Assembly: GCF_006345805.1 (NCBI RefSeq)
Contig: NW_021824178.1
Span: 1 to 19,776, forward strand
Reading direction: 5' to 3'
Source of the DNA: Octopus sinensis
Lineage: Eukaryota
DNA: 19,776 nucleotides
Shown: in pieces, positions 1 to 18,227 of the stretch
Position numbering within the stretch: the stretch's first letter is position 1
Layout: each line of letters begins with the position of its first letter
Notes under the pieces: generated by a model
What the model saw: the letters and a program-made list of their open reading frames with translations, nothing else
Database searches by the model: none
What the model was told of the DNA's origin: nothing
Translations under genes and position numbers: made by a program

Positions 1-1361
1 CTTGAAATATAAAAATTATGTTCTTTCCTAAAAATGCAACAAGAATAATTCAACCAATAACTTGGGAATTATCAAAACATTTAAAGTGCACTTTACTAGG
101 CACCAATTATTTTATCTCACTACAATTTTGGAAACTGACAAAGTTTCGTTTATGAATCCTATAAACATTTAAATCTTAAGGACACTGTTTTTTTATAAAA
201 TGGCTTAGAAAACGTATGCTCAAAACTATTGAAAATTACTTCAAAAAAACTAAAAAAATAGATTTATGAAAAATTACAGATAAAACTTTAATTGATGAAT
301 TGATCATTTAAAACAGATATTTATGATCCTATTCAATGGAAGAATTCATTTCTATAAATATTTAGAAGAAAATGCAATTTATTCGCTTACAAAAAATTTG
401 CAATTAGCGAAGAAAGTAATTTTGATAATGAAGATCAGCGTTCTCAATGCGGCCCCCCGGATTTTTTTGCGGCCCCTCTAGATAACTAACTTTTTAATTT
501 TTTAATAATGTTTAAATTTAATTATTTATTCTTAAGTTAAAATATCCATAATGGTGATTTCATTAATCAATTGAAGCACGTTTTGGGGTACATTATATAA
601 ATTTAATTTTTTAGAATTTTAAAAATTCCTTCCCTTAATGAAAATATTCGCAACTCCATTCAGCGTGGAAATTAAGGATGCGCCTGGCAAAGTTTCAACT
701 AGAACTCATTAATTTACAACATGATATAGAACAGGCGGCATTGTTCAAAAATGCGTCCTTATTAATTTTTACGAATTAATTCCTCAAGAAATTCAAAAAT
801 ATAACACACAATGCATATATGAATCTACAATATTTATGCAAATCATATTTAGTAAAATGGAAAATATAAAATATATAAAATATTTTTTGTGCGGCCCGCG
901 AAGCTAATCTTAATTATCGATTTGGCCCTGGCTAAAAAGGTTGAGAACCCCTGATGAAGATCCTGAAAACAATCTGCAGATAAAAATTTTCCTTCAAATG
1001 AACAAACAATAATTCATTTCACTAGAAATGAGATTGGTGTAAAATTAAGAGAATTGAGAAGTCACTAATCGAAATTGTCGAAAACGAAGATGTGCTTCTA
1101 ATTACTTCAAGTCGAAGATTTGAGAAAAAAATCAAAATAAAAGAGAAAAACAAACGGGACTGGAATATTACTTTGATAAAAAGCATAATTCTTTGTTAAA
1201 TTAAAATTAATTTTTTCAATTACGTCAATTTTGGCTATTTTCGAATTATTAAACAGTTCTACTCGCATTCAAAAATTATTGATTATATTCTGAAATTCGC
1301 CATTTCTCAAATTCGCCGCAAAAATGACGGAACCAAAATGGCGAATTTGGGAGTTTCACTG
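1..1361 (+). mobile_element. pogo/Tigger-like DNA transposon, 3' part (DDE_1 transposase C-terminal remnant and right TIR); left end outside window
   Basis: Bases ~19-250 translate, with frameshifts, as MFFPKNATRIIQP-x-LGIIKTFK...LKDTVF...KTIENYFKK, resembling the pogo-family FLPPNTT..IQP.D.GII..FK / AW..V...TI.NCF motifs. The element ends ...gagtttcactg followed by TA (1362-1363), with a 13-bp subterminal inverted pair (1293-1305/1336-1348). The homologous TA is empty in the duplicate near 14425. Confidence 0.75.
436..953 (+). mobile_element. Non-autonomous hAT (Buster/SPIN-like) deletion derivative nested in the pogo element
   Basis: Perfect 8-bp TSD atgaagat (428-435; 954-961). Ends cagcgttctcaa / ttgagaacccctg with subterminal gcggccc repeats. 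Interior encodes a frameshifted hAT C-terminus (IFATPFSVEIKDAP..FQLELINLQHD...YLC..FSKM). Confidence 0.88.
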
Positions 1362-4179
1362 TATTTATATACAAAAATGAGTCACTTAAATTATAAAAGA
1401 ATGAAATTGAATTAATAATTCTAAAAAATTAATATCACACAATTCAAACGTTAGCTTTTTAGTCCTGTCTAATGCAAAGCTTATTTCATACAATTTCCTG
1501 TCTAATGCAGAAAATTCAAATAAAATATTGTAAATTTTATTAGACAATTTTATTTTTTAAAGAATCTTTATTCAAAAAATCGTATTTGAATAAATGACTA
1601 GAGTAAAACCATCACAAAATGTAGCAAAACTCTATTAGTGAGATTAGACAAATAAAATATAAAAACATAATTATTACAAAAATCAAAAATCAATCATCAT
1701 CATCAAGAAATCGAGGCATGCAAAGACACCAAATGAGGAAGCAACGTGAGAGTAGTAGCATCAACCTACTAATAATCCCCCTCCAATCACCGTCATAAAG
1801 TCAAAGGCAATTCCATATTTATCAAACGACTCCTCCAATTCGAAAACAACTTTGTATCGCGTGCTTATATTCGTCAATACTGTCATTTGGCTTTCATCCG
1901 CTTCCCACTCCAGGGCCTCGTGGAATGTACTGTGACGCTTTCTCTCAGCCTCCTTCTCAAATCCTTTCCCAAAAGTAGCCTCGTGAATCAACAAATCTGC
2001 GTCCATTCCTGCCTCTATCAACCTCGAACAAGGACGAGTGTCGGCCGATATACAATCTTGTAGTCACTTTCAGTCTCCAACACAAGCCCGTGTGTTCTGG
2101 GATGTGTATTACTTCACAGGCCTCAACTGGGACACTCAATTCAATAAATTAACCGACTTTAAGCCAAACGAACACAAAATCGACGACAAGTCCACTTTTC
2201 CATCGACAACATCAAAGTTATTTACAAACTAACAAATTAGTGAAAAATCAACTTTATTCCCCCAGCCACGTTCAAATCAAAAGACAGTCATATTTTGGAA
2301 GGTTTTAAAATATTTATGAGGTACCATGACTGTCAAGGGAGGACTAGTAAGCCCATATCCTCAAATGCCTTCTTGCGTGCCAAAAGTAGTGTAATCAACC
2401 CCTGGAGTGATAAAAAACAGAATAATCAACTCCGTGGTGATCATAGTGCATATGTGAGATAAAAACAACTCCAATACTCCTCAAAACCCTCCCAAGCTCA
2501 TCTCCATAACGTAATGTCAGCTGAATCAACGTAGATGGCCCACAGTCTGTCAATATACATTTTCATAACTAATATTAACTTACAAATATATTAACCATGT
2601 CCATATAAGTATCGAGGATAAATTCCTCCTTAAAGAAGGCTGGGCGGCCCCCGTACCCAGAAACACGACCTGAGGGTACTTTATTACTGTGGTAACTACA
2701 ATCAGAAATAGCAAGTACCCGAGAGTTGTACAATTCTCTAAAAGAGGAATTTAAAGTTCGGAAATGGTTTATACGGTTGTTGTTTTAATTTGAAAGTTGG
2801 ATATTTCCATTTTATTTAAATTTAAAAGTTGGGATGAAGAGAAAGAATTGGATTGGTTGATAGACATATCCTATTATCAAATAATACGATTTAAACAATT
2901 GTTTTCAATGGCGGAAATATATCCGAGTTTATAGCCGTTAGAACTGAATGGAAATTGGCAGTGGATCCCCAACATGTATCACACACGGAGTCATTTATGA
3001 ACACATTCCTTGCCCCAACACCAAAACTGTCAATTACTATTATTTAATACCGTTCTATCCATTTTTTATATTCTTGAGTATTAGCATGGTCAATGGGGTT
3101 CAAATGTACGACTACTGCAGAACACTGGTTAAACTCGTATATCTCAGAATTATAGAACTCAGCCAATCTCTTGTCTGAGACCACATCCATTAGTAATTCG
3201 AGAGAGAGAATATCAACCACAATGACAGGAGGTCGTCTATCAGGCTCGGAAAATACCTCATCTTTGTATATCTTAATATAATGTATAATTCATGGCTACT
3301 TTTTTCCCATCGACATCAATCTCTCCCTCGCGTAACAAAACACCAATATTTTTCCACTAAACTAATATTTTAATAATTAATTACCATTTTAATCCAATTC
3401 ATTACATTTGTCTAACATCAGGTGTCTATGGCCCTCATGTGGGCGGAAAAACGTAAATAATAGTCGATTGACGAACATCGAATTTCATTTTTTTGTTTTT
3501 CGACGAAAACTCAGCCAAAAATAAACAATTTTTTATTACTTTATTTTCAGACGAATAAAACGGAAATTCCAAAAAATCAATCTCAAAATGTTTCGTTTTG
3601 AGTTTTTCTCTACTCAAAAAACCTTAAAAATCACCAAAAATATTATTTACTAAAAGGGACTTTTTCCATGTTAAAACTCTTAAAAGTTGAGAAATATTGA
3701 CTCTAAAAATACCTTATAATTCCTTTAAACTATGTCAAATTGGGTTTTTTATTGGAATTTTGACATCCTTTTCGAGATTGTTGAAAGAATAGGCGAGACC
3801 TACAAATTGTCACTCGTTCCTCACCCCCCAATCCTCCGAGATTGTCCCACATGTTATTGTAAGGATATTCCATCAATTTTTGATAATTTCATTCTAATGT
3901 TGATTAAAATATATTTACTTTGATTGCATTATTACTTTTTGGGTCCCTTCTCCGCAGTTTATTAGGTATCTTATAGTTGTAGGGATTAATACCGATTGTT
4001 GTCGGCTGCTATCATCAGAGTTTTCGGAAAATTATTGAATCCTGTACTTCCGACGATTAGCTCGTAGTAAGAAAATTGGGGGATGTTTTTCGTGGATTTC
4101 ATTAAGGTAACACGTGGCAAAACGCTAGACATACAATCATTTAAATTTAAAAAAAATGTATTTATAATTTAATTACAGT
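1362..4179. repeat. Segmental duplication, copy 1 (direct repeat of 14427-18273)
   Basis: Colinear near-identity by eye from tatttatatacaaaaatgagtc to atttataatttaattacagt; copy 2 additionally carries an insertion at 14751-15781. Confidence 0.95.
1690..4132 (-). CDS. ELAC2: tRNase Z long form (ELAC2/Trz1 type), copy 1; multi-exon, frameshifted as sequenced
   Basis: Spliced translation gives the N-terminal pseudo-motif YLINCGEGTQK...KLSKID..., FLGTGAAQPSLRRN, TDCGPST, SHMHYDHH (HxHxDH), LLIHEATF, RHST, AFDFM. At least 14 GT-AG introns of 23-29 nt (e.g. 3970-3992, 3894-3918, 3800-3824, 3623-3650, 3357-3384, 3272-3299, 3027-3050, 2871-2896, 2696-2718, 2569-2595, 2402-2430, 2229-2252, 2127-2153, 1766-1790). 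Intact versus pseudogene status is unresolved. Confidence 0.93.
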
Positions 4180-6588: not shown

Positions 6589-6975
6589 ATAAGCGATCGT
6601 CTGGGACGCGACATGCTCTGACACTTTTGCGTCAACATGCCTTCTCGCGTCCGCGATCGAAGCTGGCACAGCGGCGAGGAGGGCAGAGACCGGAGAGAAA
6701 GACAAGTACGCCTCGCTCGCCGACAGATTCCTCTTTGTGCCTGTTTCGTCGAAACATCAGGCACATTCGGCCCAGCCACGCTACGTTTTCTCACCGAGAG
6801 AGGCCGTCACCTCGGGAGGATTAGAAACGACCCCCGTGAGGTCAATCGGCTTTTTGAGCGCGTCTCAATAGCCGTACTCAGGGGAACAGTTTCTCTATTC
6901 TCTCTGCGGCTAGTAGCTGACTTCTTGTTCCATTTTCTTTTCATTTGTATTAATAAAAAAAAAAAAAAAAAAAAA
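6589..6975 (+). mobile_element. 5'-truncated CRE-like non-LTR retrotransposon (RLE C-terminus) with poly(A) tail
   Basis: WDATCSDTFAS...AGTAARRAE..KYASL...VETSGTFGP...DPRE...LFERVSIAVLRG; AATAAA running into A21 (6955-6975); possible 6-bp TSD aattct (6583-6588; 6974-6979). Confidence 0.88.
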
Positions 6976-6994
6976 TTCTTGAAATTGACTGAAC

Positions 6995-7174
6995 ACTGTT
7001 TAGTACATTTTTCAATATTTTTAGACTTGAAACCCGAGAGTTAAGACAGTTCTATTTTATTGGTTTTAACAAAAATACATTCTAAAGTAAATTTATTTTA
7101 ACTTATTATGCTTTTTTAGGGTCACCAACCCCAAGACGGAAAAGAATACCTTATAGACTATATAAAATAACCCC
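6995..7174. repeat. ~180-bp direct repeat; second copy at 7586-7754 plus 10080-10095, split by the Buster element
   Basis: Colinear match actgtttagtac...gaaacccgagagtt...ccccaagacg...ttatagactatataaaataacccc; this copy has a single ttatagac (7151-7158), the empty site. Confidence 0.9.
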
Positions 7175-7754
7175 AGAGGGTATCAATTATCTGATGATTC
7201 TTGCAATTTACAAGAAAAACATTGTCGCTATAGGAGCATACAGGAATTTACTATATTTGTTTAAATAAAAGTTTAATCTGGTTAAATTGATTGGGTATTA
7301 AAAACGGGTTATTATTTATTTGATTTTTTATTATAATTGGTTTTTCTAAACAAAATTAATTTTTCCAACGTGTTGATACGTTTATTATTTGTTTTTAGTG
7401 GTGTGCTAGTTTATCGATAATTATTAAATTTGTAAATATTTTTTTTCATATCTCAGATTATTTCATTTATTTACATTTTATTTATCACTATTCATTATTC
7501 TTATGTTTATTGGTTCTTCAAATCATTTCTTGTTTTTAAAAAAATGATATGAAGGCATTTTTGAATTTTAATAAACATTATGAAGACTGTTTAGTACGTT
7601 TTTCCATATTTTTGGATCTCTCTCATTGGAACCCGAGAGTTAAAACAGTTCCATTTTATCGGTTTTAACAAAAATACATTCTAAAGTAAATTTGTTTTAA
7701 TTTATTACGTTTTTTTGGAGTCATCAACCCCAAGACGAAAAATACCTTATAGAC

Positions 7755-10071
7755 CAGTGGTTCTCAACCTGGGGTCCGCGGACCCTTTAGGGGTCCGCGA
7801 AAGATCCAGGGGGTCGCGAGATTTTTCTGAAACTTTATTTAAATGTTTCTATTAATGATAACAATTTTAAATTAATATATAATATAATTAAATCATATTA
7901 ATAATATCTCTTTTAGATATATTATAAATTAATATATTTAATATTCAATAATACTGAGGAGGCTAAATTACTTTAAAGCTGAATGTAACTCAATTATTTA
8001 TAAAAATCGTATATATATATTTATTTTTTAGTAAAAGTTAATAAAATTTTTAAGCACGCTATTGATATGAATTCCTCGAATGTTATTAAGATACGCAAAT
8101 ATAATCCTGATTATATAAAATATGGGTTTATTGTATTGATAAAGATGGATTTGAAAGCCCAAAATGTGTTGTGTGCATGAAAATTCTGTCACACAATAGC
8201 ATGAAACCAACAACTTTTGTGAGACACTTGCGCACATGTCATCCCCATCTAATCCACAAAAATAAGGATTATTTTATCTTTGCGTAAAATGATGAAAAAT
8301 CAAGTATTGACTCGTTTCATACAAACTTTGCCTTCTGATAATTCCATGCTATTAGCATCTTACATGATCTCATTACGTATAGCGAAAAAAAAGAAACCTC
8401 ATAATATTGCCGAAAAACTGATTCTTCCTTGTTGTAAAGACATAGTACGTACTCTTATTGGCACTCATGCTGAAATATGATTTCGGAAATACTATTATCG
8501 AATGATACTGTTCATCGACGAATTTCTGAAATGTCAGAAAATATTAAGTGTCAGGTTATTGATATTATATTATTTATTTTAACAGGTGGTAGAACAAATA
8601 AAAACTTCATGCCATTAAAATTTCGCTATACAAGTTGATGAATCCACCGATGTAGCGAACTGTGCTCAATTAATAATATTTGCTCGTTATGTCTATGACG
8701 GAGATTTTAAAGAGGATTTTTTATTTTCCTATTCGCTTGAATCGACCACTAAAGGAGAAGATATTTTTCAAGCAATTTCTATGTTTTTGACAGTGTTGGG
8801 TTATCTTGGAATAATGTATGTTGTTGCACAACCGATGGAGCTCCAGGAATGCTTGGCTTTCATTCTGGCTTTAGAGGCCAAGTTAGACTTGCTAACCAGG
8901 AAACGAAAACATATGCATTGTATGCTACATCGATATGCACTTGCTGCAAAAACATTACCTTCAGATTTAAGATATGTTCTCGATGATGTCGTACATATCA
9001 TAAATTATATTAAAAAGAGTGCTTTAAATTCGCGCATTTTCAGACTTATTTGCGAAGAATTTGAAAAGGATGGAAAGGCTTTGTTATTCCACACTGAGGT
9101 GAGATGGCTATCTCGGGGAAACATTCTTGCCAGAGTTTTTTTCCGTGAGGAATGAATTATCTGAATATTTTATTCGCGAAAACAATTCCAAATCATCGGA
9201 ATTATTTCGAAATTAATGGATAGTTCATGGCTATCTAAACTTGCTTACTTGAGAGATGTCTTCTCTCGTATAAATTCACTCAACAAATTGCTTCAGGGAA
9301 GACATGAAACAATAATTGATTTTGTGGATAAAATTAAGTTTGTTAACTGTTTCATATTAATTATTAGTGCTTTTTTGATGAAGAGTTAACACTGTGGAAA
9401 GAAAAAGTAAAACTAAATAATTTTACTATGTTTGAATCCTTTGAAGAACAATCTGTAAATATAGATGCATTTGAAATCAAAAAATAACCGAACTTATTTA
9501 TGCACATTTAACATATCTTCAACAAGAAGTAAATAAATACTTTCCAGAATTGAACGAAATTGATTTGAAATTCATTCGTACACCATTCAATGTTGATCCA
9601 CGTTTGGTCGATGAAAATATCGAAGAGGCTTTTATTGACATGATCAATGATTCAAACGCAAAAGATTTGTATGAAAAACTTGCTTTATCAAGATTTTGGT
9701 GCGAAATGTGTAAGCATTATCCTTCCGTAAGCGCAAATGCATAAAATTTGTTGCTTATATTCCCGACAACATATTTATGCGAACATGGCTTCTCAGCACT
9801 TCTCAATATAAAAAATAATCATCGCGCAAGACTGAATATTGAAGATGACATCAGGGTTTGCTTGTCGACAACCGAGCCTCTTATTGAAAAAATTGCCTCG
9901 AAAAAACAATATCAACCTTCTCACTAATTTTCTCTATTGATTTAATAATAAATTTTGTTTTTAGATAAGTAAAATTTTTTTGACAAAAAACTTAATAAAT
10001 ATGTAGGGGGTCCGCGAAATTTTTCATTTACTCACAAGGGGTCCGCGGACAAAAAAGGTTGAGAACCACTG
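7755..10071 (+). mobile_element. Full-length hAT transposon, Buster family
   Basis: Perfect 16-bp TIRs cagtggttctcaacct (7755-7770; 10056-10071), ggggtccgcg subterminal repeats, perfect 8-bp TSD ttatagac (7747-7754; 10072-10079) fitting the Buster nnnTAnnn consensus. Confidence 0.97.
8067..9927 (+). CDS. Buster/Charlie-type hAT transposase (BED finger, DDE/D, C-terminal dimerisation domain), two micro-introns, frameshifted as sequenced
   Basis: RKYNPDYIKYGF...PKCVVC..LS..SMKP...RHL.T.HP; LSNDTVHRRI; VDESTD; TDGAP; HCMLHRYAL; EVRWLSRG; TTYLCEHGFS; QYQPSH*. Introns at 8555-8585 and 9338-9367. Confidence 0.92.
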
Positions 10072-10397
10072 TTATAGACTATATAAAATAACCCCTTAAA
10101 ACTGCCACAAAAATTATGTATGTTTGAAAAATTCACATATAAGCCGACAAATAATTTTACGTCGCTGTTGGGATAGTTTGAAAATTCAAGGAACTAGACC
10201 AATTGCCACTAATTATGAAACGCTCTTTGTAAAAATATTTTAAATTCTTCATCCAATTTTTTAAATTCTTGAATTATTTCAGAGTTGGTCGAATTTCAAT
10301 GAAATATATTTGAAAGCGGATTATTTGAATGATAGAAGTATTGAATAAAGGATTGTAATCTGGGGAAATGTTTGGGATATAGAATATAAAGCAATTT

Positions 10398-10871: not shown

Positions 10872-13800
10872 TTCTTTGGTGAACAATGACGGAAGTAATC
10901 TGGTCGAAGGGAATTAATGTTCATTCTCTGTAAATAAGCATATTTTTGAATGCTTAGCAATCCTTTCACAAGCTATGAGATACGACTTTGACCGAATGTT
11001 GCAGAGAATTAACCCAAATAAGACATTCGCAGACAGTGACATCATTGATTGGGTCAACTCCAAGGTTCTTTTTTTATATTTCAAAATTAGTTCGCACAAC
11101 CTGTGACTGCATTTAAAGATGATAGATTTTCTAATTCAAAGCCTATTTTTGAACTGATAGACTCAGTTAAGGACGATATGTACAAAAACAGTACATCAAC
11201 GACGGAAAGGACTACGATGTAATTTAATATTAATGCAATAATCAATGAAAAGATAGAATTATGTTTATGGTGGATATGTAGCCTGGCGGATTGCCAAACT
11301 GTTTCCCGGATAATGGCAATCGAGAGCCGTTGCATTAGCCAGTTCGCCTCCCGAGGATCATGGGTGCGCATTGAGATTTGGCTCCGAGCTTGCGAAGGAA
11401 CTTTTAATTTTTGGACCGAGAGCACCCGACGTCTCAGCCGCGTTCGGCACCACGGAAAACTTCTCTGAGAGGGCAAATATTTTAAAAGCTTTAAATCTTT
11501 AGCCTTCTTAGCTGCAGATTTGGCCTCCAGGGCACACGAAGTTAAGTGAGAAGCAGAAAAGGTGTCGCAGCAGGTGCGTCCCAAACGAGGCCTTTTCCGC
11601 CTTCCGAGGGGAAAAGGGTCATCCGTCAGGACGTTTCCCGTCGCCGCGGTCAAGGCCCGGTGGCTCGAGGACCGAAGGAAATCCCGCCGAGTCGAGGGCC
11701 CTCCGTATGATGTCGTTCATAGCAGAGTGCCTCGGAAAACGTCCGGCACTCCTCTTGCACGATAAAGGGTGCAGACCGAAAGGGTCAACAGTGCAGCCAC
11801 AGCGGCACGTGTGCGGGACACATTGCCTTAGTCCGAGTCGCAGAGAGACTCCGATCCTTACCGCTTCATCGTCAAGGAGAGTGCCAGATGGGGCATTCGG
11901 GAATGCACAAAGCCAAGCTCCGCTAGCCGGGGATGCTGCCGACAGAAGGCAAGCGCGGCGGTGCTGGTTGGACGACTCGAGCAGCAGATTGAAAGTTTGC
12001 TGCATCTAATTCGATCCCAGGCTCGTTGAGACATTCGATCTTCCGGAAAGTCAAGGCCTTGTTCTCTCCAGACTTCGCTGAAATGAGCAACATTTGTGTC
12101 CAAGGAAAATTTAGAAAAGGAGCGTAGAATTTCCATGACAAGTGTGTGGCTCGCGGAGACGGAAGAGAGGTAAGCAGGTAACGATAGGTCGAAACATGAG
12201 CGGATGCCGAGCCCTCCAAAAAATAACGGGAGGGTTGCCTGTCTCCAACCCATGTCGTCGAAGGGGAATTGCATACGTTCTGAGTGCAAGTGCGGATAAG
12301 GAGGTCAATTGCTGAAAGCCTCTCTGGAAAATCAAAGCACGGAGAAGAGCGAAGCAAATAGGAGAGCTTTGGATCGAGAGCAATTCCGTAGGAGGAATAA
12401 TGCAGTGTGCGAGTCCAGCTGTCTGATACGATCAAAAGCTTCTTCGAGGAAAAGTTCTTTTTTGCGTAGGGCCACATCGATAGAGTGCCAGCGACCGGGG
12501 CTCCGAGAATAAAAAGTTCGTCAATGGGAGTAGATTGAACTCCCGGGATAAGATCGCAGAAAGAGGAAACAGCGTCTTCGAAAATAGATTCCGAGCATCC
12601 AAGGTTGGTAATTTCACATTTTGGAGGAATTTAAAATGAGGCCGATTTCTCCAGAGCCAGGATGATTTTAATTATGTCCTGCAAGACGATGTCCGGAGGG
12701 CCACCGAGAGTGGCGTCGTCGAGATACCAGGTTCAATGGAAGATAGAAGCTTGGTCACCTCGGAGATCCAAGACAGAAAAGGAGGGCCCAGAGGGTCTCC
12801 CTGTTGGACTCCCGAAGCAGACGGGATAATGTCGGAATCAAAAATGGGGAAGATGGTTGGCCATATGATTGGAAAGCGAGCCCAAATAAGGAAGGACAGT
12901 ACTCAGAGCAGGACTCTAAGACTCTGTCCCGTCGGATACTGGTTGAATGCATTTCTGATGTCAAGCTTGATCAAAATGTTGGACATTGAGAGGATCCCGA
13001 CAGAGACATCATCTTCCGAAAAAAGTAAAGGCGGTTGATTGGCCGGATGGGGACAGACGGAAGGTCCGCAGGAGACGGTGGATGTTTTTCGAGCAAGGCC
13101 TTAAAGACTGACCGAGACAAGTTGAGTGGTCCATTGTCAGACGAAATAACTCTGAGAGCTGCACGGACTCCGCCCTCGCTAAGTTTAGAATGGATCATTT
13201 TGCGTAGACGGAGTTGTTGGGCTTCTGGGCTCTCATGTTTGCGACATTGAGACTGTTTGTGCGACTTTGATGACTTGAGAGGGGGCGAGTCTGGGAAGTA
13301 TTCCCGAGCCATAAAGGAGCGAATGTTTTTCTTCATACGGGTGGCCAGAGATGTCGAGTCCCGATCAGCATTCACAGGGGCACCGAGAGCACAGGGAGCA
13401 AAGGTCAGAAGACGGATCCAGTCCTGTTCGTCTTTAGACAATATTGCAGCGTCAATGCAAGATGATAGAGCATCGGCCGCGGTAGCTCGTGCTGCCTTGG
13501 GGATCTTCACGGGGATGATGCGGGATTTGCGTCTCTCCGAAACGAGCTTCAGCATGGAAACTGGATCAAACGGCGCCACGTCGGAGGGGTTTGGACGACA
13601 CACGGGATTGCTTCGGGCTGTGCCCAGGCATACAGAACAATTCCAAATGGAAATAGCGGACATTGCCTTCTTGGTCACATGTGAGATTGATTCGAACAAG
13701 TTGCGCAGGAGATCCAAAGCTTACGACTGTTCGAAGAGTTGCAAATGTTACAAGTTTTCATTAGATTGCGAAAACAAACGTCAACAAACCAGCACGTTCA

Positions 13801-13970
13801 TATTTTTAATATATCAGGATTTGTATGCTAATGCTAAGTTGGCATTGTCCGTAGTCAGGAAAATGGGAGGAAAGGTCTTTGCACTCCCCGAAGATATTGT
13901 TGAACACAAGGCAAGACCAATTATGCTTCTCTGTGCCTCACTTATGATCATTGAGAACAGCCTTAAGTAG
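10870..13970 (+). pseudogene. Fimbrin/plastin, 3' half only (end of CH3 plus CH4); last intron expanded by a retrotransposon
   Basis: FSLVNNDGSNLVEGN / CLAILSQAMRY...DSDIIDWVNSK / [intron 11065-11090] / FAQPVTAFKDDRFSNSKPIFELIDSVK...INDGKDYD / [intron 11219-13817] / DLYANAKLALSVVRKMGGKVFALPEDIVEHKARPIMLLCASLM*, matching plastin FSLVGIGGQDLNEGN...WVN...[26 protein letters not shown]. Confidence 0.88.
11231..13800 (-). mobile_element. CRE-like non-LTR retrotransposon (single ORF, RT plus CCHC plus RLE), apparently 5'-complete, with an internal deletion
   Basis: ORF ~13761 to 11265 with frameshifts: KIPKAAR..W.RLL.F; LLEKHP; KLDIRNAFN; SGVQQGDPLGP; WYLDDATLGG; GLGIRS; CRCG..VD..G.H.LSC; [13 protein letters not shown]; GKRPDG; WDATCCDT; QRLSIAIIRGN. 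Possible short TSD atat (11227-11230; 13800-13803). Confidence 0.92.
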
Positions 13971-14750: not shown

Positions 14751-15781
14751 GAAGCATGTAGAAGTAGAGAAATTACATATATATGACCTTTTGACGAACA
14801 AATTCAAGGTAATCCATAATGCAAAGGTGAATTTCGTACCGTTGGTTATTACGTGGGATGGAATAACATCCCGATTTTATAAACACTACCAAAACTCCTT
14901 GCAGTCCAGGAATCTACGCGAGCTTATATCCATCAATCGTGATCAAGAGAACACTGAAAAGCATGCGCGCCCGGAGTAGAGCAACCAATTGCAATTTTTT
15001 GCAATTAAATATAATTTAATTAAAATTCGATAAATAATAAAGTAATGAATAGACATTAATTTTAATTATATTTTTATTCGATTTAAATTTGCAATTTTTT
15101 GCAATTTTTTGTAGTCATTTTACAATTTTTTTGCAATTTTTTTAAATAAAAAAAAATTTTTTTATTAAAAAATAATATAATTATAAGTAAAGACCCTAGA
15201 CTTTAATCAGATCCATGCGACATAAAATCCTAATCTCTATATATCAAAAAAGCTTGAGAAATCAGGAATACTAAGTATTCTTGAATTCTCAAATAAGAAT
15301 CTATCGCCAGAAGTTTATTCACATCTCAGAAAATGTAGCGCAAGTTCAGCATCTATCGAAAGGGCAATATCTCTTTTGACGAAAATTCTTAGTAAAGAGA
15401 GGAACTTTAAACCTGAAAATGTTCAGGAATATTTGATTTCCTATTACAATAAATAATTTCGTTAATTTTTTGCATAATGTAATGTTACAATTAAAAATTA
15501 TTTTTGCAATTTTTTACAATTTTAAAATTCATTTTTGCAATTTTTTTTATTAAAAAGTGCAATTTTTTGGTTGCCCTAGCCCGGAGTATAAACTTCTTCC
15601 TACAGCGGCGAAGCATGCAATTAAATCGGACTCGAGAACAACCACAAAAGTGGCCTGCTCTGTAAAATGGATAAATGTACCCGTCAAAGACACTTGCTCG
15701 GGCTCAAAGAGAAAGAGAATTGACTGAAAGCAGACGCAATAATTAAAAATCAATTTTATCTGGACTTTTCAAATAAATTTG
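14751..15781 (+). mobile_element. 5'-truncated RLE-type (R2/NeSL-like) non-LTR retrotransposon 3' end
   Basis: VEVEKLHIYDLLTNK.KVIHNAKV.FVPLVITWDGI..FYKHY...AYI(Q)SIVIKRTL (RLE C-terminus); flanked by an 11-bp direct repeat ttaacataaat (14740-14750; 15782-15792); absent from copy 1. Confidence 0.75.
14977..15578 (+). mobile_element. Non-autonomous hAT-superfamily element nested in the retrotransposon fragment
   Basis: TIRs tagagcaaccaa / ttggttgcccta; perfect 8-bp TSD gcccggag (14969-14976; 15579-15586); ttgcaattttt subterminal repeats; residual transposase tail SASIERAISLLTKILSKERNFKPENVQEY. Confidence 0.9.
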
Positions 15782-18227
15782 TTAACATAAATCATCCACG
15801 GAATCATCAAGAAATAGCAAGGCATGCATAGACACCAAATGAGGAAGCAACGTGAGAGTAGTAGCATCAACCTACAAATAAATCCCCCTCCAATCACCGT
15901 CATAAAGTCAAAGGCAATTCCATATTTATCAAACGACTCCTCCAAATCGAAAACAACTTTATATCGCGTGCTTATATGCGTCAATACTGTCATTTTGGCT
16001 TTCATCCGCTTCCCAACTCCCAGGGCCTCGTGGAATGTACTGTGACGCTTTCTCTCAGCCTCGTTCTCAAATCCTCTCCCAAAAGTAGCCTCGTGAATCA
16101 ACAAATCTGCGTCCATTCCTGCCTCTATCAACCTCGAACAAGGACGAGTGTCGGCTGAGTATACAATCTTGTAGTCACTTTCAGTCTCCAACACAAGCCC
16201 GTGTGTGTCTGGGATGTGTATTACTTTCACAGGCCTCAACTGAGACACTCAATTCAAAAAATTAACCGACTTTAAGCCAAACGAACACAAAATCGACGTC
16301 AAATCCACTTTTCCGTCAACAACATCAAAGTTATTTACAAAACTAACAAATTAGTGAAAAATCAACTTTATTCCCCCAGCCACGTTCAAATCAAAAAGAA
16401 GGTCAATATTTTGGAAGGTTTTACAATATTTATGAGGTACCATGACTGACAAGGGAGGACTAGTAGCCCTATATCTCAAATGCCTTCTTGCGTGCCAAAA
16501 GTAGTGTAATCAACCCTGGAGTGATAAAAACAGAATAATCAACTCCGTGGTGATCATAGTGCATATGTGATATAAACACAACCCCAATACTCCTCAGAAC
16601 CCTCCAAGCTCATCTCCATAACGTAATGTCAACTGAATCAACGTAGATGGCCCACAGTCTGTCAATATACATTCATAACTAAATATTAACTTACAAATAT
16701 ATTAACCATGTCCATATAAGGATCGAAGATAAATTCCTCCTTAAAGAAGGCTGGGCGGCCCCCGTACCCAGAAATACGACCTGAGGGTACTTTATTACTG
16801 TGGTAACTACAATCAGAAATAGCAAGTACCCCGAGAGTTGTACAATTCTCTAAAAGAGGAGATTAAAGTTTCGGAAATTGGTTTATAAGGTTGTTGTTTA
16901 ATTTGAAAGTCGGATATTTCCATTTTATTTAAATTTAAAAGTTGGGATGAAGAGAAAGAATTGGATTGGTTGATAGACATATTCTATTATCAAATAATAC
17001 AATTTAAACATTGTTTTTCAATGGCGGAAATATATCCGAGTTTATAGCCGTTAGAACTGAATGGAAATTGGCAGTGGATCCCCAACATGTATCACACACG
17101 GAGTCATTATGAACACATTCCTTGCCCCAACACCAAAACTGTCAATTAGTATATTTTAATACCGTTCTATCCATTTTTATATTCTTGAGTATTAGCAATG
17201 GTCGATGGGGTCAAATGTACGACTACTGCAGAACACTGGTTAAACTCGTATATCTCAGAATTATAGAACTCAGCCAATCTCTTGTCTGAGACCACATCCA
17301 TTAGTAATTCGAGAGAGAGAATATCAACCACAATGAAAGGAGGTCGTCTATCAGGCTCGGAAAATACCTCATCTTTGTATATCTTGGTATAATTATAATT
17401 CATGGCTACTTTTTTTCCCATCGACATCAATCTCTCCCTCACGTAACAAAACACCAATATTTTTTCCACTAAACTAATATTTTAATAATTAATTACCATT
17501 TTAATCCCAATTCATTACATTTGTCTAACATCAGGTGTCTATGGCCCTCATGTGGGCGGAAAACGTAAATTATAGTCGATTGACGAACATCGAATTTCAT
17601 TTTTGTTTTTCGACGAAAACTCAGCCAAAAATAAGCAATTTTTTATTTTACTTCATTTTCAGACGAATAAAACGGAATTCCAAAAATCAATCTCAAAATG
17701 CTTCGTTTTGAGTTTTCTCCACTAAAAACCTTAAAAATCACCAAAAATAATATTTACTAAAAGGGACTTTTTCCATGTTAAAACTTTAAAAGTTGAGAAA
17801 TATTGACTCTAAAATACATATAATTCCTTTAAACTATATCAAATTGAGTTTATTGAATTTTGACATCCTTTTCGAGATTGTTGAAGGATAGGCGAGACCT
17901 ACAATTTTTCACTTGTCCCTCACCCCCCAATCCTCCGAGATTGTCCCACGTGTTATTTGTAATGAATATTCCATCAATTTTTGATAATTTCATTCTAATG
18001 TTGATTAATATATTTACTTGATTGCATTATGACTTTTGGGTCCCTTCTCCGCAGTTTATTAGGTATCTTATAGTTGTGGGGATTAATACCGATTGTTGTC
18101 GGCTGCTATCATCAGAGTTTCGGAAAATTATTGAATCCTGTACTTCCAACGATTAACTCATAGTAAGAAAATTGGGGAATGTTTTTCGTCGATTTCATTA
18201 AGCAACACGTGGCAAAACGCTGGACAT
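15782..18227 (-). CDS. ELAC2: tRNase Z long form (ELAC2/Trz1 type), copy 2; multi-exon, frameshifted as sequenced
   Basis: Same exon/intron structure as copy 1; YSADTRPC, LLIHEATF, RHST, LTHISTRY, AFDFM; after splicing the last 25-nt intron it ends VDATTLTLLPHLVSMHALLFLDDSVDDLC* (stop 15782-15784). Confidence 0.93.

Follow-up and report, generated by a model that had tools for sequence, protein, structure and literature searches.

Can a DNA transposon take up spliceosomal introns as small as those of its host and still keep a working transposase? The question is raised by a stretch of 19,776 nucleotides of contig NW_021824178.1 (the whole stretch is referred to here as the window), in which a Buster element of the hAT superfamily occupies positions 7755-10071. 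A preliminary description of this DNA had proposed that the transposase gene of the element carries two gained micro-introns, of 31 and 30 nt, sized for the host spliceosome. The analysis presented here indicates that the window holds a Buster copy in a micro-intron genome, most likely that of a dicyemid mesozoan, and that both introns were probably gained and are probably spliced in the functional form of the family, the copy in the window being dead as assembled.

The Buster element is 2,317 bp long, has a GC content of 31% and is bordered by an 8-bp target-site duplication (TSD), TTATAGAC, identical at 7747-7754 on the left and 10072-10079 on the right. Its ends are terminal inverted repeats (TIRs) of 16 bp, CAGTGGTTCTCAACCT, complementary at 16 of 16 positions between 7755-7770 on the forward strand and 10056-10071 on the reverse strand, so that the perfect TIRs and TSD of the preliminary description are found again on both sides. 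Short TIRs, of 10-25 bp, are a mark of the hAT superfamily. The same end is present in an intron-less relative (L003, below) and in a second copy of the family, which was reached through the best protein match (P0001) on contig VCDQ01000570.1 (854 kb; L001) of assembly GCA_006345805.1, filed under Octopus sinensis. In both copies the TSD has TA at positions 4-5 and fits nnnTAnnn, a fit that is statistically weak with only two insertions; this consensus is described in PMC3517528, with reference to Arensburger 2011, as separating Buster from Ac. The decamer GGGGTCCGCG has five matches in the window, none farther than about 65 nt from an element end, compared with an expectation of 0.15; none of 200 shuffles reached five. 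On the forward strand it forms a left subterminal block at 7771-7799 (7771-7780 and 7790-7799) and a right one at 10007-10047 (10007-10016 and 10038-10047), and by analogy with other hAT elements these repeats are presumed to be transposase-binding sites. An Rfam scan of the window gave no match.

Between the ends lies a coding region that runs on the forward strand from an ATG at 8067 to a TAA at 9925-9927. Its frame-corrected conceptual translation, used as the query, has 926 protein homologues at E <= 1e-10, with E values down to 1e-217; the named ones are ZBED5-, ZBED8-, SCAND3- and FAM200-like and, among the 120 matches listed, the full-length homologues cover about 99-100% of the spliced product. 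The Pfam families of the homologues are DUF4371, FAM200-ZBED5_RNase-like, FAM200-GTF2IRD2-like and Dimer_Tnp_hAT, and the window product itself gives weak BED and DUF4371 matches and a Dimer_Tnp_hAT match at residues 518-572. The translation holds QVDESTD with the first catalytic D, TTDGAP with the second, EVRWLSRG with the RW and YLCEHGFS with the catalytic E, in columns that are invariant or nearly so in the homologue alignment (A3). Three exons can be delineated on the forward strand by translation and alignment with the L001 copy. Exon 1 (8067-8554), traced in three-frame translation from the ATG to ...ENIKCQ, would encode a BED zinc finger and the N-terminal DNA-binding region, where the weak BED and DUF4371 matches fall; exon 2 (8586-9337) the catalytic core with QVDESTD, TTDGAP and EVRWLSRG, supported by the motif columns; and exon 3 (9368-9927) the remainder of the insertion domain, YLCEHGFS with the catalytic E, and the hAT C-terminal dimerisation region, supported by the Dimer_Tnp_hAT match, up to the stop TAA. 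Fold comparison, done with Foldseek against the PDB, used the AlphaFold model of P0002, a relative with 55% identity, in place of the window protein. This model, with a mean predicted local distance difference test score (pLDDT) of 86.9, has as its top 12 PDB matches only Hermes transposase (E about 1e-9, TM score about 0.5), which gives P0002 a predicted Hermes-like fold, an RNase-H core with an all-helical insertion domain. Searched by sequence, the solved structures gave no match to the spliced protein, the likeness to Hermes coming only from the fold comparison. The element is thus assigned to the Buster family of the hAT superfamily on the names of its matches, the TSD rule, its ends and its motifs, and the earlier identification of a Buster transposase holds up against the 926 homologues, the nnnTAnnn duplications and the Hermes-like fold of the relative.

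The two interruptions of this gene were located by enumerating all deletions between conserved peptide anchors and asking which restore the frame, contain no stop and have GT-AG ends. Micro-intron 1 (8555-8585, forward strand; GTTATTGATATTATATTATTTATTTTAACAG) is a GT-AG segment of 31 nt in phase 0, with 13% GC, that breaks the frame. Between its anchors, RISEMSEN and EQIKTS, 135 deletions are frame-restoring and stop-free, and a single one of the 135 has GT-AG ends; it joins ...ENIKCQ to VVEQIKTS. Micro-intron 2 (9338-9367, forward strand; GTTTGTTAACTGTTTCATATTAATTATTAG) is a GT-AG segment of 30 nt in phase 2, with 20% GC, which is in frame and stop-free if read through; here too only one GT-AG solution exists, it joins DKIN to AFLMK, and the resulting protein is gap-free. 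Each junction has a sole canonical solution in the L001 copy as well. The 31-nt removal suggested in the preliminary description is therefore correct to the base; of its 30-nt counterpart, the boundaries and the junction of DKIN with AFLMK stand, and the continuation to '..LW' is obtained only if a 2-nt insertion at 9382-9383 is ignored. The alignment of 59 full-length homologues is free of gaps and insertions at both junctions, which agrees with the claimed match to a gap-free Buster consensus. The two segments, with 13-20% GC, compare with 31% for the whole element. From the dinucleotide content, the chance that a given insertion in the element begins with GT and ends with AG is about 0.0015, and two such insertions, even if a few equivalent registers are allowed, would be expected at well below 1e-3. 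On the P0002 model, both junctions fall within confidently modelled helices, junction 1 in helix 145-168 and junction 2 in helix 405-427. Elsewhere in the alignment, five homologues have a 7-residue insertion near a 'QG' site; no retained intron was found there, and this candidate was rejected as a tandem peptide duplication, LQLQGSGNLKLQG.

Additional evidence came from the copy in L001 (6979-11705), a second insertion of the same family with 89% identity to the window copy over 2 kb. Its TSD, CTATAAAG, is present on both sides and differs from that of the window, and the immediate flanks are unrelated; therefore, the two copies are independent insertions. Both introns are present at the same positions as in the window and must, accordingly, have been present in the common ancestor too. 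Intron 1 of the L001 copy (10193-10218) is 26 nt long and is identical to the 31-nt intron of the window apart from a 5-nt indel; neither length can be divided by three, and the frame of both copies thus depends on removal of the entire segment. In L001, intron 2 measures 30 nt and differs from the window at 5 of its 30 nt, which would amount to 4 amino-acid changes in 10 codons if it were coding. The spliced exons of the L001 copy are open from ATG to stop over 600 codons save for one TGA. Comparison of the two copies by the Nei-Gojobori method over 591 comparable codons gave nonsynonymous (dN) and synonymous (dS) divergences of 0.052 and 0.317, a dN/dS of 0.16 that departs from equal rates with a Fisher p of 1e-27. 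Purifying selection on the protein while the gene held a frame-breaking segment of 26-31 nt argues, indirectly, that the segment is spliced out, and the introns are very likely functional. The 26 bases of intron 1 shared by the copies are 100% identical, while synonymous sites differ by 26%; such identity has a probability of about 0.05 at the overall divergence of 11% and of 0.0004 at the synonymous rate, and it may point to constraint on so small an intron. No such conservation is seen in intron 2, with its five differences.

Two further features of L001 were noted next to this copy. Its 5′ untranslated region contains a 2.5-kb nested transposon (7147-9652), an insertion whose opposite strand codes for the C-terminal portion of a further hAT-like transposase. 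Upstream of both Buster copies, window 1-1363 and L001 1568-6456 share four collinear matches in the same orientation (88-95% identity), which overlap pogo-like and reverse-transcriptase-like open reading frames (ORFs) in L001 and are probably shared repeats rather than synteny. An orthologous locus was considered for these stretches and rejected, given the different TSDs and immediate flanks of the Busters.

Several observations weigh against the interpretation of the two segments as spliced introns of a dicyemid Buster. Only two copies of the intron-bearing family, those of the window and L001, could be compared, and we infer their host, most likely a dicyemid for both sequences, from the neighbouring genes, which enters as a caveat. 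Both introns begin with GTT; the published dicyemid donor logo is 'GTa' (PMC13644364), and GTT also starts two of the six host introns used as a yardstick here. Since intron 2 keeps the frame and lacks stops in the two copies alike, read-through is formally possible, and the NCBI protein model P0001 does read through it. A profile built from both spliced junction peptides, used to search for transcript-derived proteins, recovered only 18 distant relatives (34-58% identity) and missed P0001 as well. Beyond the introns, the window copy carries nine more frame-shifting indels, placed on the forward strand by alignment with L001: in exon 1 after 8130, after 8276 (2 nt) and after 8472; in exon 2 after 8783, at 8906, at 9145 and after 9201; and in exon 3 at 9382-9383 (the 2-nt insertion, directly after intron 2) and after 9478. 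It also has two in-frame TAA codons, at 8616-8618 in exon 2 and 9742-9744 in exon 3, and all these lesions are private to it when compared with L001. The window copy is non-functional as assembled, and no transposase could be made from it; neither copy has the intact reading frame of an autonomous element, the one having nine frameshifts and two TAA codons and the other one TGA.

Part of this damage may lie in the assembly. ELAC2 (tRNase Z long form), a host gene outside the element (15769-18162, reverse strand; human ELAC2 is its best solved-structure match, E = 4e-33), is normally essential and single-copy. In the window it has at least two 1-nt frameshifts, between YGDELG and RVLRSIGVVF near 16600 and between ARKKAFE and YRATSPP near 16480, where the human protein is gap-free and no intron fits. 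The indel density of ELAC2 is similar to that of the transposon copy, which means either about 0.5% of assembly indel errors or an ELAC2 pseudogene, and, given these frameshifts in ELAC2, part of the nine in the element may be consensus errors. The D. japonicum assembly was obtained by merging Illumina and PacBio RS II assemblies (PMC6736024). The two TAA codons are substitutions and are therefore more likely to be real lesions. A ciliate host reading TAA as glutamine was considered and rejected, since these codons are GAA and TTA in the L001 copy and long host exons lack in-frame stops.

These lesions are the natural starting point for a different explanation, namely that the segments are AT-rich insertions of a defective, non-autonomous master moved in trans and that their GT-AG ends are coincidental. 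Many hAT families consist mostly of dead copies, and the junction-peptide search yielded no transcript-derived protein, a search weak enough to have missed P0001 itself. A dead lineage would, however, be expected to show a dN/dS of about 1 and not the 0.16 found between insertion-bearing copies; both insertions have GT-AG ends, at a chance of about 0.0015 each, together with the size of host introns and a low GC content; the spliced frame of L001 is open save for its TGA; and two more GT-AG micro-segments lie elsewhere in a second Buster lineage (below). With this balance, an origin of the segments as mere insertions is very unlikely.

A milder version accepts intron 1 and takes the 30-nt segment for a tolerated, translated insertion of ten residues, in which KFVNCFILIIS replaces N. 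The length of the segment, a multiple of three without stops in either copy, would allow it, and P0001 ('ZBED5-like [Octopus sinensis]'), a chimeric NCBI model in which the transposon is fused with an adjacent tetraspanin exon, translates it; gene predictors tuned to octopus would presumably miss a 30-nt intron. Translation is also hard to reconcile with the GT-AG ends in a single canonical solution, with a size and composition like those of host introns, with 4 amino-acid changes in 10 codons as against a dN of 0.05 in the exons, with the absence of any insertion at this site in the 59 homologues, and with the modelled structure, since a hydrophobic decapeptide would break helix 405-427 (pLDDT about 91). 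A translated insertion at this site is, on these grounds, improbable, and removal of both segments by splicing is the preferred interpretation.

The nature of the host was approached through the genes that accompany the two copies. Enumeration between conserved blocks of ELAC2 identified two GT-AG introns on the reverse strand, 18033-17995 (39 nt) and 16706-16679 (28 nt), and the same procedure in an L2HGDH-like gene of L001 (18300-19700, reverse strand) identified four, of 27, 28, 29 and 27 nt. These six GT-AG introns (ELAC2, n=2; L2HGDH, n=4) served as the yardstick, and against their range of 27-39 nt the transposon introns, of 26/31 and 30 nt, are indeed host-sized, as the preliminary description had assumed. 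At two other ELAC2 junctions, YELIVGS to SVLIPTT (about 18130) and HHG to LITLLL (about 16540), no canonical intron was found; the latter contains a GT-AG segment of 28 nt where 30 nt are needed, and both cases may reflect the same indel noise. A protein search with the ELAC2 exon recovered only six distant RNase Z fragments. Introns of 27-39 nt do not correspond to cephalopod gene structure. Dicyemid introns have a median length of 27 bp, two thirds of them being shorter than 30 bp (PMC6543705; median also in PMC13644364), and a mean of 38 bp, in a genome with 36.7% GC and 49% repeats (PMC6736024), and among 51 animal genomes compared, introns below 30 bp were found only in Dicyema japonicum and myxobolid myxozoans (PMC13644364). 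The window (34.9% GC) and L001 (33.1% GC) are both rich in transposon fragments. L2HGDH, with its introns of 27-29 nt, lies on L001, and this contig is therefore probably parasite DNA; VCDQ01000570.1 would then be a parasite sequence inside an octopus assembly, and the 'octopus' protein P0001 probably has the same origin.

It could still be argued that the loci belong to a true octopus chromosome and that the element was horizontally transferred from a dicyemid parasite with introns that the octopus cannot splice. The sister copy is, after all, in the Octopus sinensis assembly, and its protein is named as octopus. The micro-introns of ELAC2 and L2HGDH beside the copies make this scarcely credible, and it was dropped once they had been seen. 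Moreover, mixing of octopus and dicyemid DNA is known: D. japonicum was isolated from O. sinensis, and freeing the dicyemid samples entirely of octopus cells was reported to be infeasible (PMC6736024).

If the host is a dicyemid, the next point is whether the introns were gained there. The nearest relatives outside the family, P0002 (55% identity) and P0007 (54%), each have one uninterrupted ORF whose size is exactly 3 x (length + 1) bases, and L003 has the same 16-bp end as the window element together with the subterminal motif GGGGTACGCG, that is, an element of the same type without introns. This comparison with the closest Busters, together with the 59 gap-free homologues, bears out the earlier proposal that the introns look gained. 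At junction 1, the relatives have CAA followed by GTG, and the window family CAG followed by GTG. The intron sites of the window family are uninterrupted in a second, highly divergent Buster remnant of L001 (14298-15653), part of whose interior is deleted. This remnant has other GT-AG micro-segments, a frame-restoring one of 26 nt at 15009-15034 and one of 30 nt at 15363-15392, whose removal gives a gap-free or nearly gap-free alignment. Micro-introns at four positions in two Buster lineages suggest recurrent gain in this genome. Intron 1 of the window is flanked by the direct repeat CAGGT (8552-8556 and 8583-8587) and the 26-nt segment of the remnant by AAGGTAA, so that AGGT-containing direct repeats accompany two of the four transposon introns and none of the host-gene introns studied here. 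They resemble what the duplication/repair model of intron gain would leave, though with n=4 the resemblance is only a lead.

Inheritance from an unsampled donor that already had micro-introns, rather than gain in this host lineage, would also account for introns that are real. With only 55% identity to the nearest relative sampled, a long branch is left unsampled, and Buster elements are known to transfer horizontally. Against a donor of this kind, such introns are restricted to dicyemids and myxobolid myxozoans among the animals compared (PMC13644364), and a second Buster lineage of the same genome has micro-introns at different positions, for which local gain is simpler; an unsampled donor is thus unlikely, if a little less so than translation of intron 2. 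Gain in the dicyemid lineage, the preferred reading, invites a broader and distinctly tentative proposal, which the present data make possible without making it probable: dicyemid genomes may still be gaining introns, with intron-less Busters repeatedly acquiring host-style micro-introns at four or more positions in two lineages, by short duplication or double-strand-break repair at proto-splice sites, and the frame-breaking intron may tie the element to hosts that splice introns of about 30 nt or less and so act as a barrier to horizontal spread.

Termini of a related kind were also seen outside these genomes. In JGI metagenome contigs (L004-L083; JGI24158J21664, JGI24021J15306, JGI24022J15233, JGI24159J19872, Ga0210059 and others), 89 loci have the exact 26-nt terminus CAGTGGTTCTCAACCTGGGGTNCGCG. 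A blastn comparison of these loci with the element found nothing past the terminus, and tblastn almost no transposase; they look like derivatives, resembling miniature inverted-repeat transposable elements, of a related Buster/Charlie-type element in another eukaryotic host present in those samples, and have no bearing on the introns.

In the functional form of the family as we infer it, one pre-mRNA would be transcribed from the element and the host spliceosome, presumably that of a dicyemid, would remove intron 1 (26-31 nt) and intron 2 (30 nt). The spliced message would encode a transposase of about 600 amino acids that comprises a BED finger, a DDE core of the RNase-H-like type harbouring an all-helical insertion domain, and a hAT dimerisation tail. 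Binding to the 16-bp ends and to the subterminal GGGGTCCGCG repeats, this protein would cut the element out and insert it again at nnnTAnnn, duplicating 8 bp of the target. The introns would have been acquired after the split from the intron-less relatives and retained during purifying selection on the protein. The preliminary description drew two possible consequences from such introns. Dependence on a host able to splice introns of about 30 nt would follow logically for the frame-breaking intron 1, and splicing-based control of transposition is pure speculation.

Introns in hAT transposases and micro-introns in dicyemids are both already known. The transposase genes of maize Ac and medaka Tol2 hold introns. 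The hAT transposase gene of Drosophila buzzatii BuT2 is likewise split, into five exons with predicted, host-typical introns of about 57-154 nt (PMC3942097); in contrast to the Buster family described here, BuT2, Ac and Tol2 belong to the Tip or Ac families and their introns are of ordinary length. Active Busters (TcBuster, AnBuster and relatives) have in common with the window family a length of 2.3-3 kb, an 8-bp nnnTAnnn TSD, inverted ends of 14-16 bp, the need for subterminal sequence beyond the TIR, and a transposase of about 600 amino acids whose DDE core is accompanied by a BED finger and a C-terminal hAT domain (PMC12637253, PMC3517528). The five characterised active members, however, each have one uninterrupted ORF (PMC12637253), whereas the window family has two introns of 26-31 nt and its copy in the window is not intact. 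These introns are near or below the limit of about 30 nt once held to be minimal for animals (PMC13644364). They resemble the cellular micro-introns of Dicyema japonicum and Dicyema sp., which are GT-AG, about 27 nt long and AT-rich, with little signal beyond the terminal dinucleotides (PMC6543705, PMC13644364). The dicyemid cellular introns are shortened old introns in a conserved exon/intron structure, according to a title cited in PMC6543705 (Ogino et al. 2010). The transposon introns, in contrast, sit in a gene with intron-less relatives and look newly gained. In the Drosophila P element, tissue-specific retention of the third intron has been shown experimentally to control the transposase. 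The window family is like the P element in being a DNA transposon whose transposase needs intron removal, but nothing in the window family points to regulated splicing. A full-text literature search returned no paper linking Dicyema and transposon introns, and what is new here is an intron-bearing Buster, with introns of the smallest size class known in animals and seemingly of recent gain.

Animals seldom gain introns, the event is difficult to observe, and how it happens is still debated. An element that arrived without introns and whose transposase then came to bear them, with relatives that share the element ends, offers a clean comparison of before and after on a datable branch. Should RNA data confirm the splicing, the family would provide a natural test set for the minimal needs of a spliced intron of 26-31 nt, a way to ask whether dicyemids gain introns while shrinking old ones, and an example of host RNA processing limiting the host range of a transposon. 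A practical consequence is that a contig of a public octopus assembly, and an NCBI 'octopus' protein with it, are probably parasite sequence.

Finally, the region downstream of the element in the window contains a block of about 50% GC (11087-13970) amid surroundings of roughly 30% GC, with long overlapping ORFs on both strands. Two of these ORFs were scanned (11619-12005 and 12971-13717) and gave no Pfam match. Peptide motifs of the block (...ETSG...RE..WL.QR.S.A..R...) recur at window 6637-7044 and L001 21393-22376, and the block probably consists of fragments of a retroelement family.

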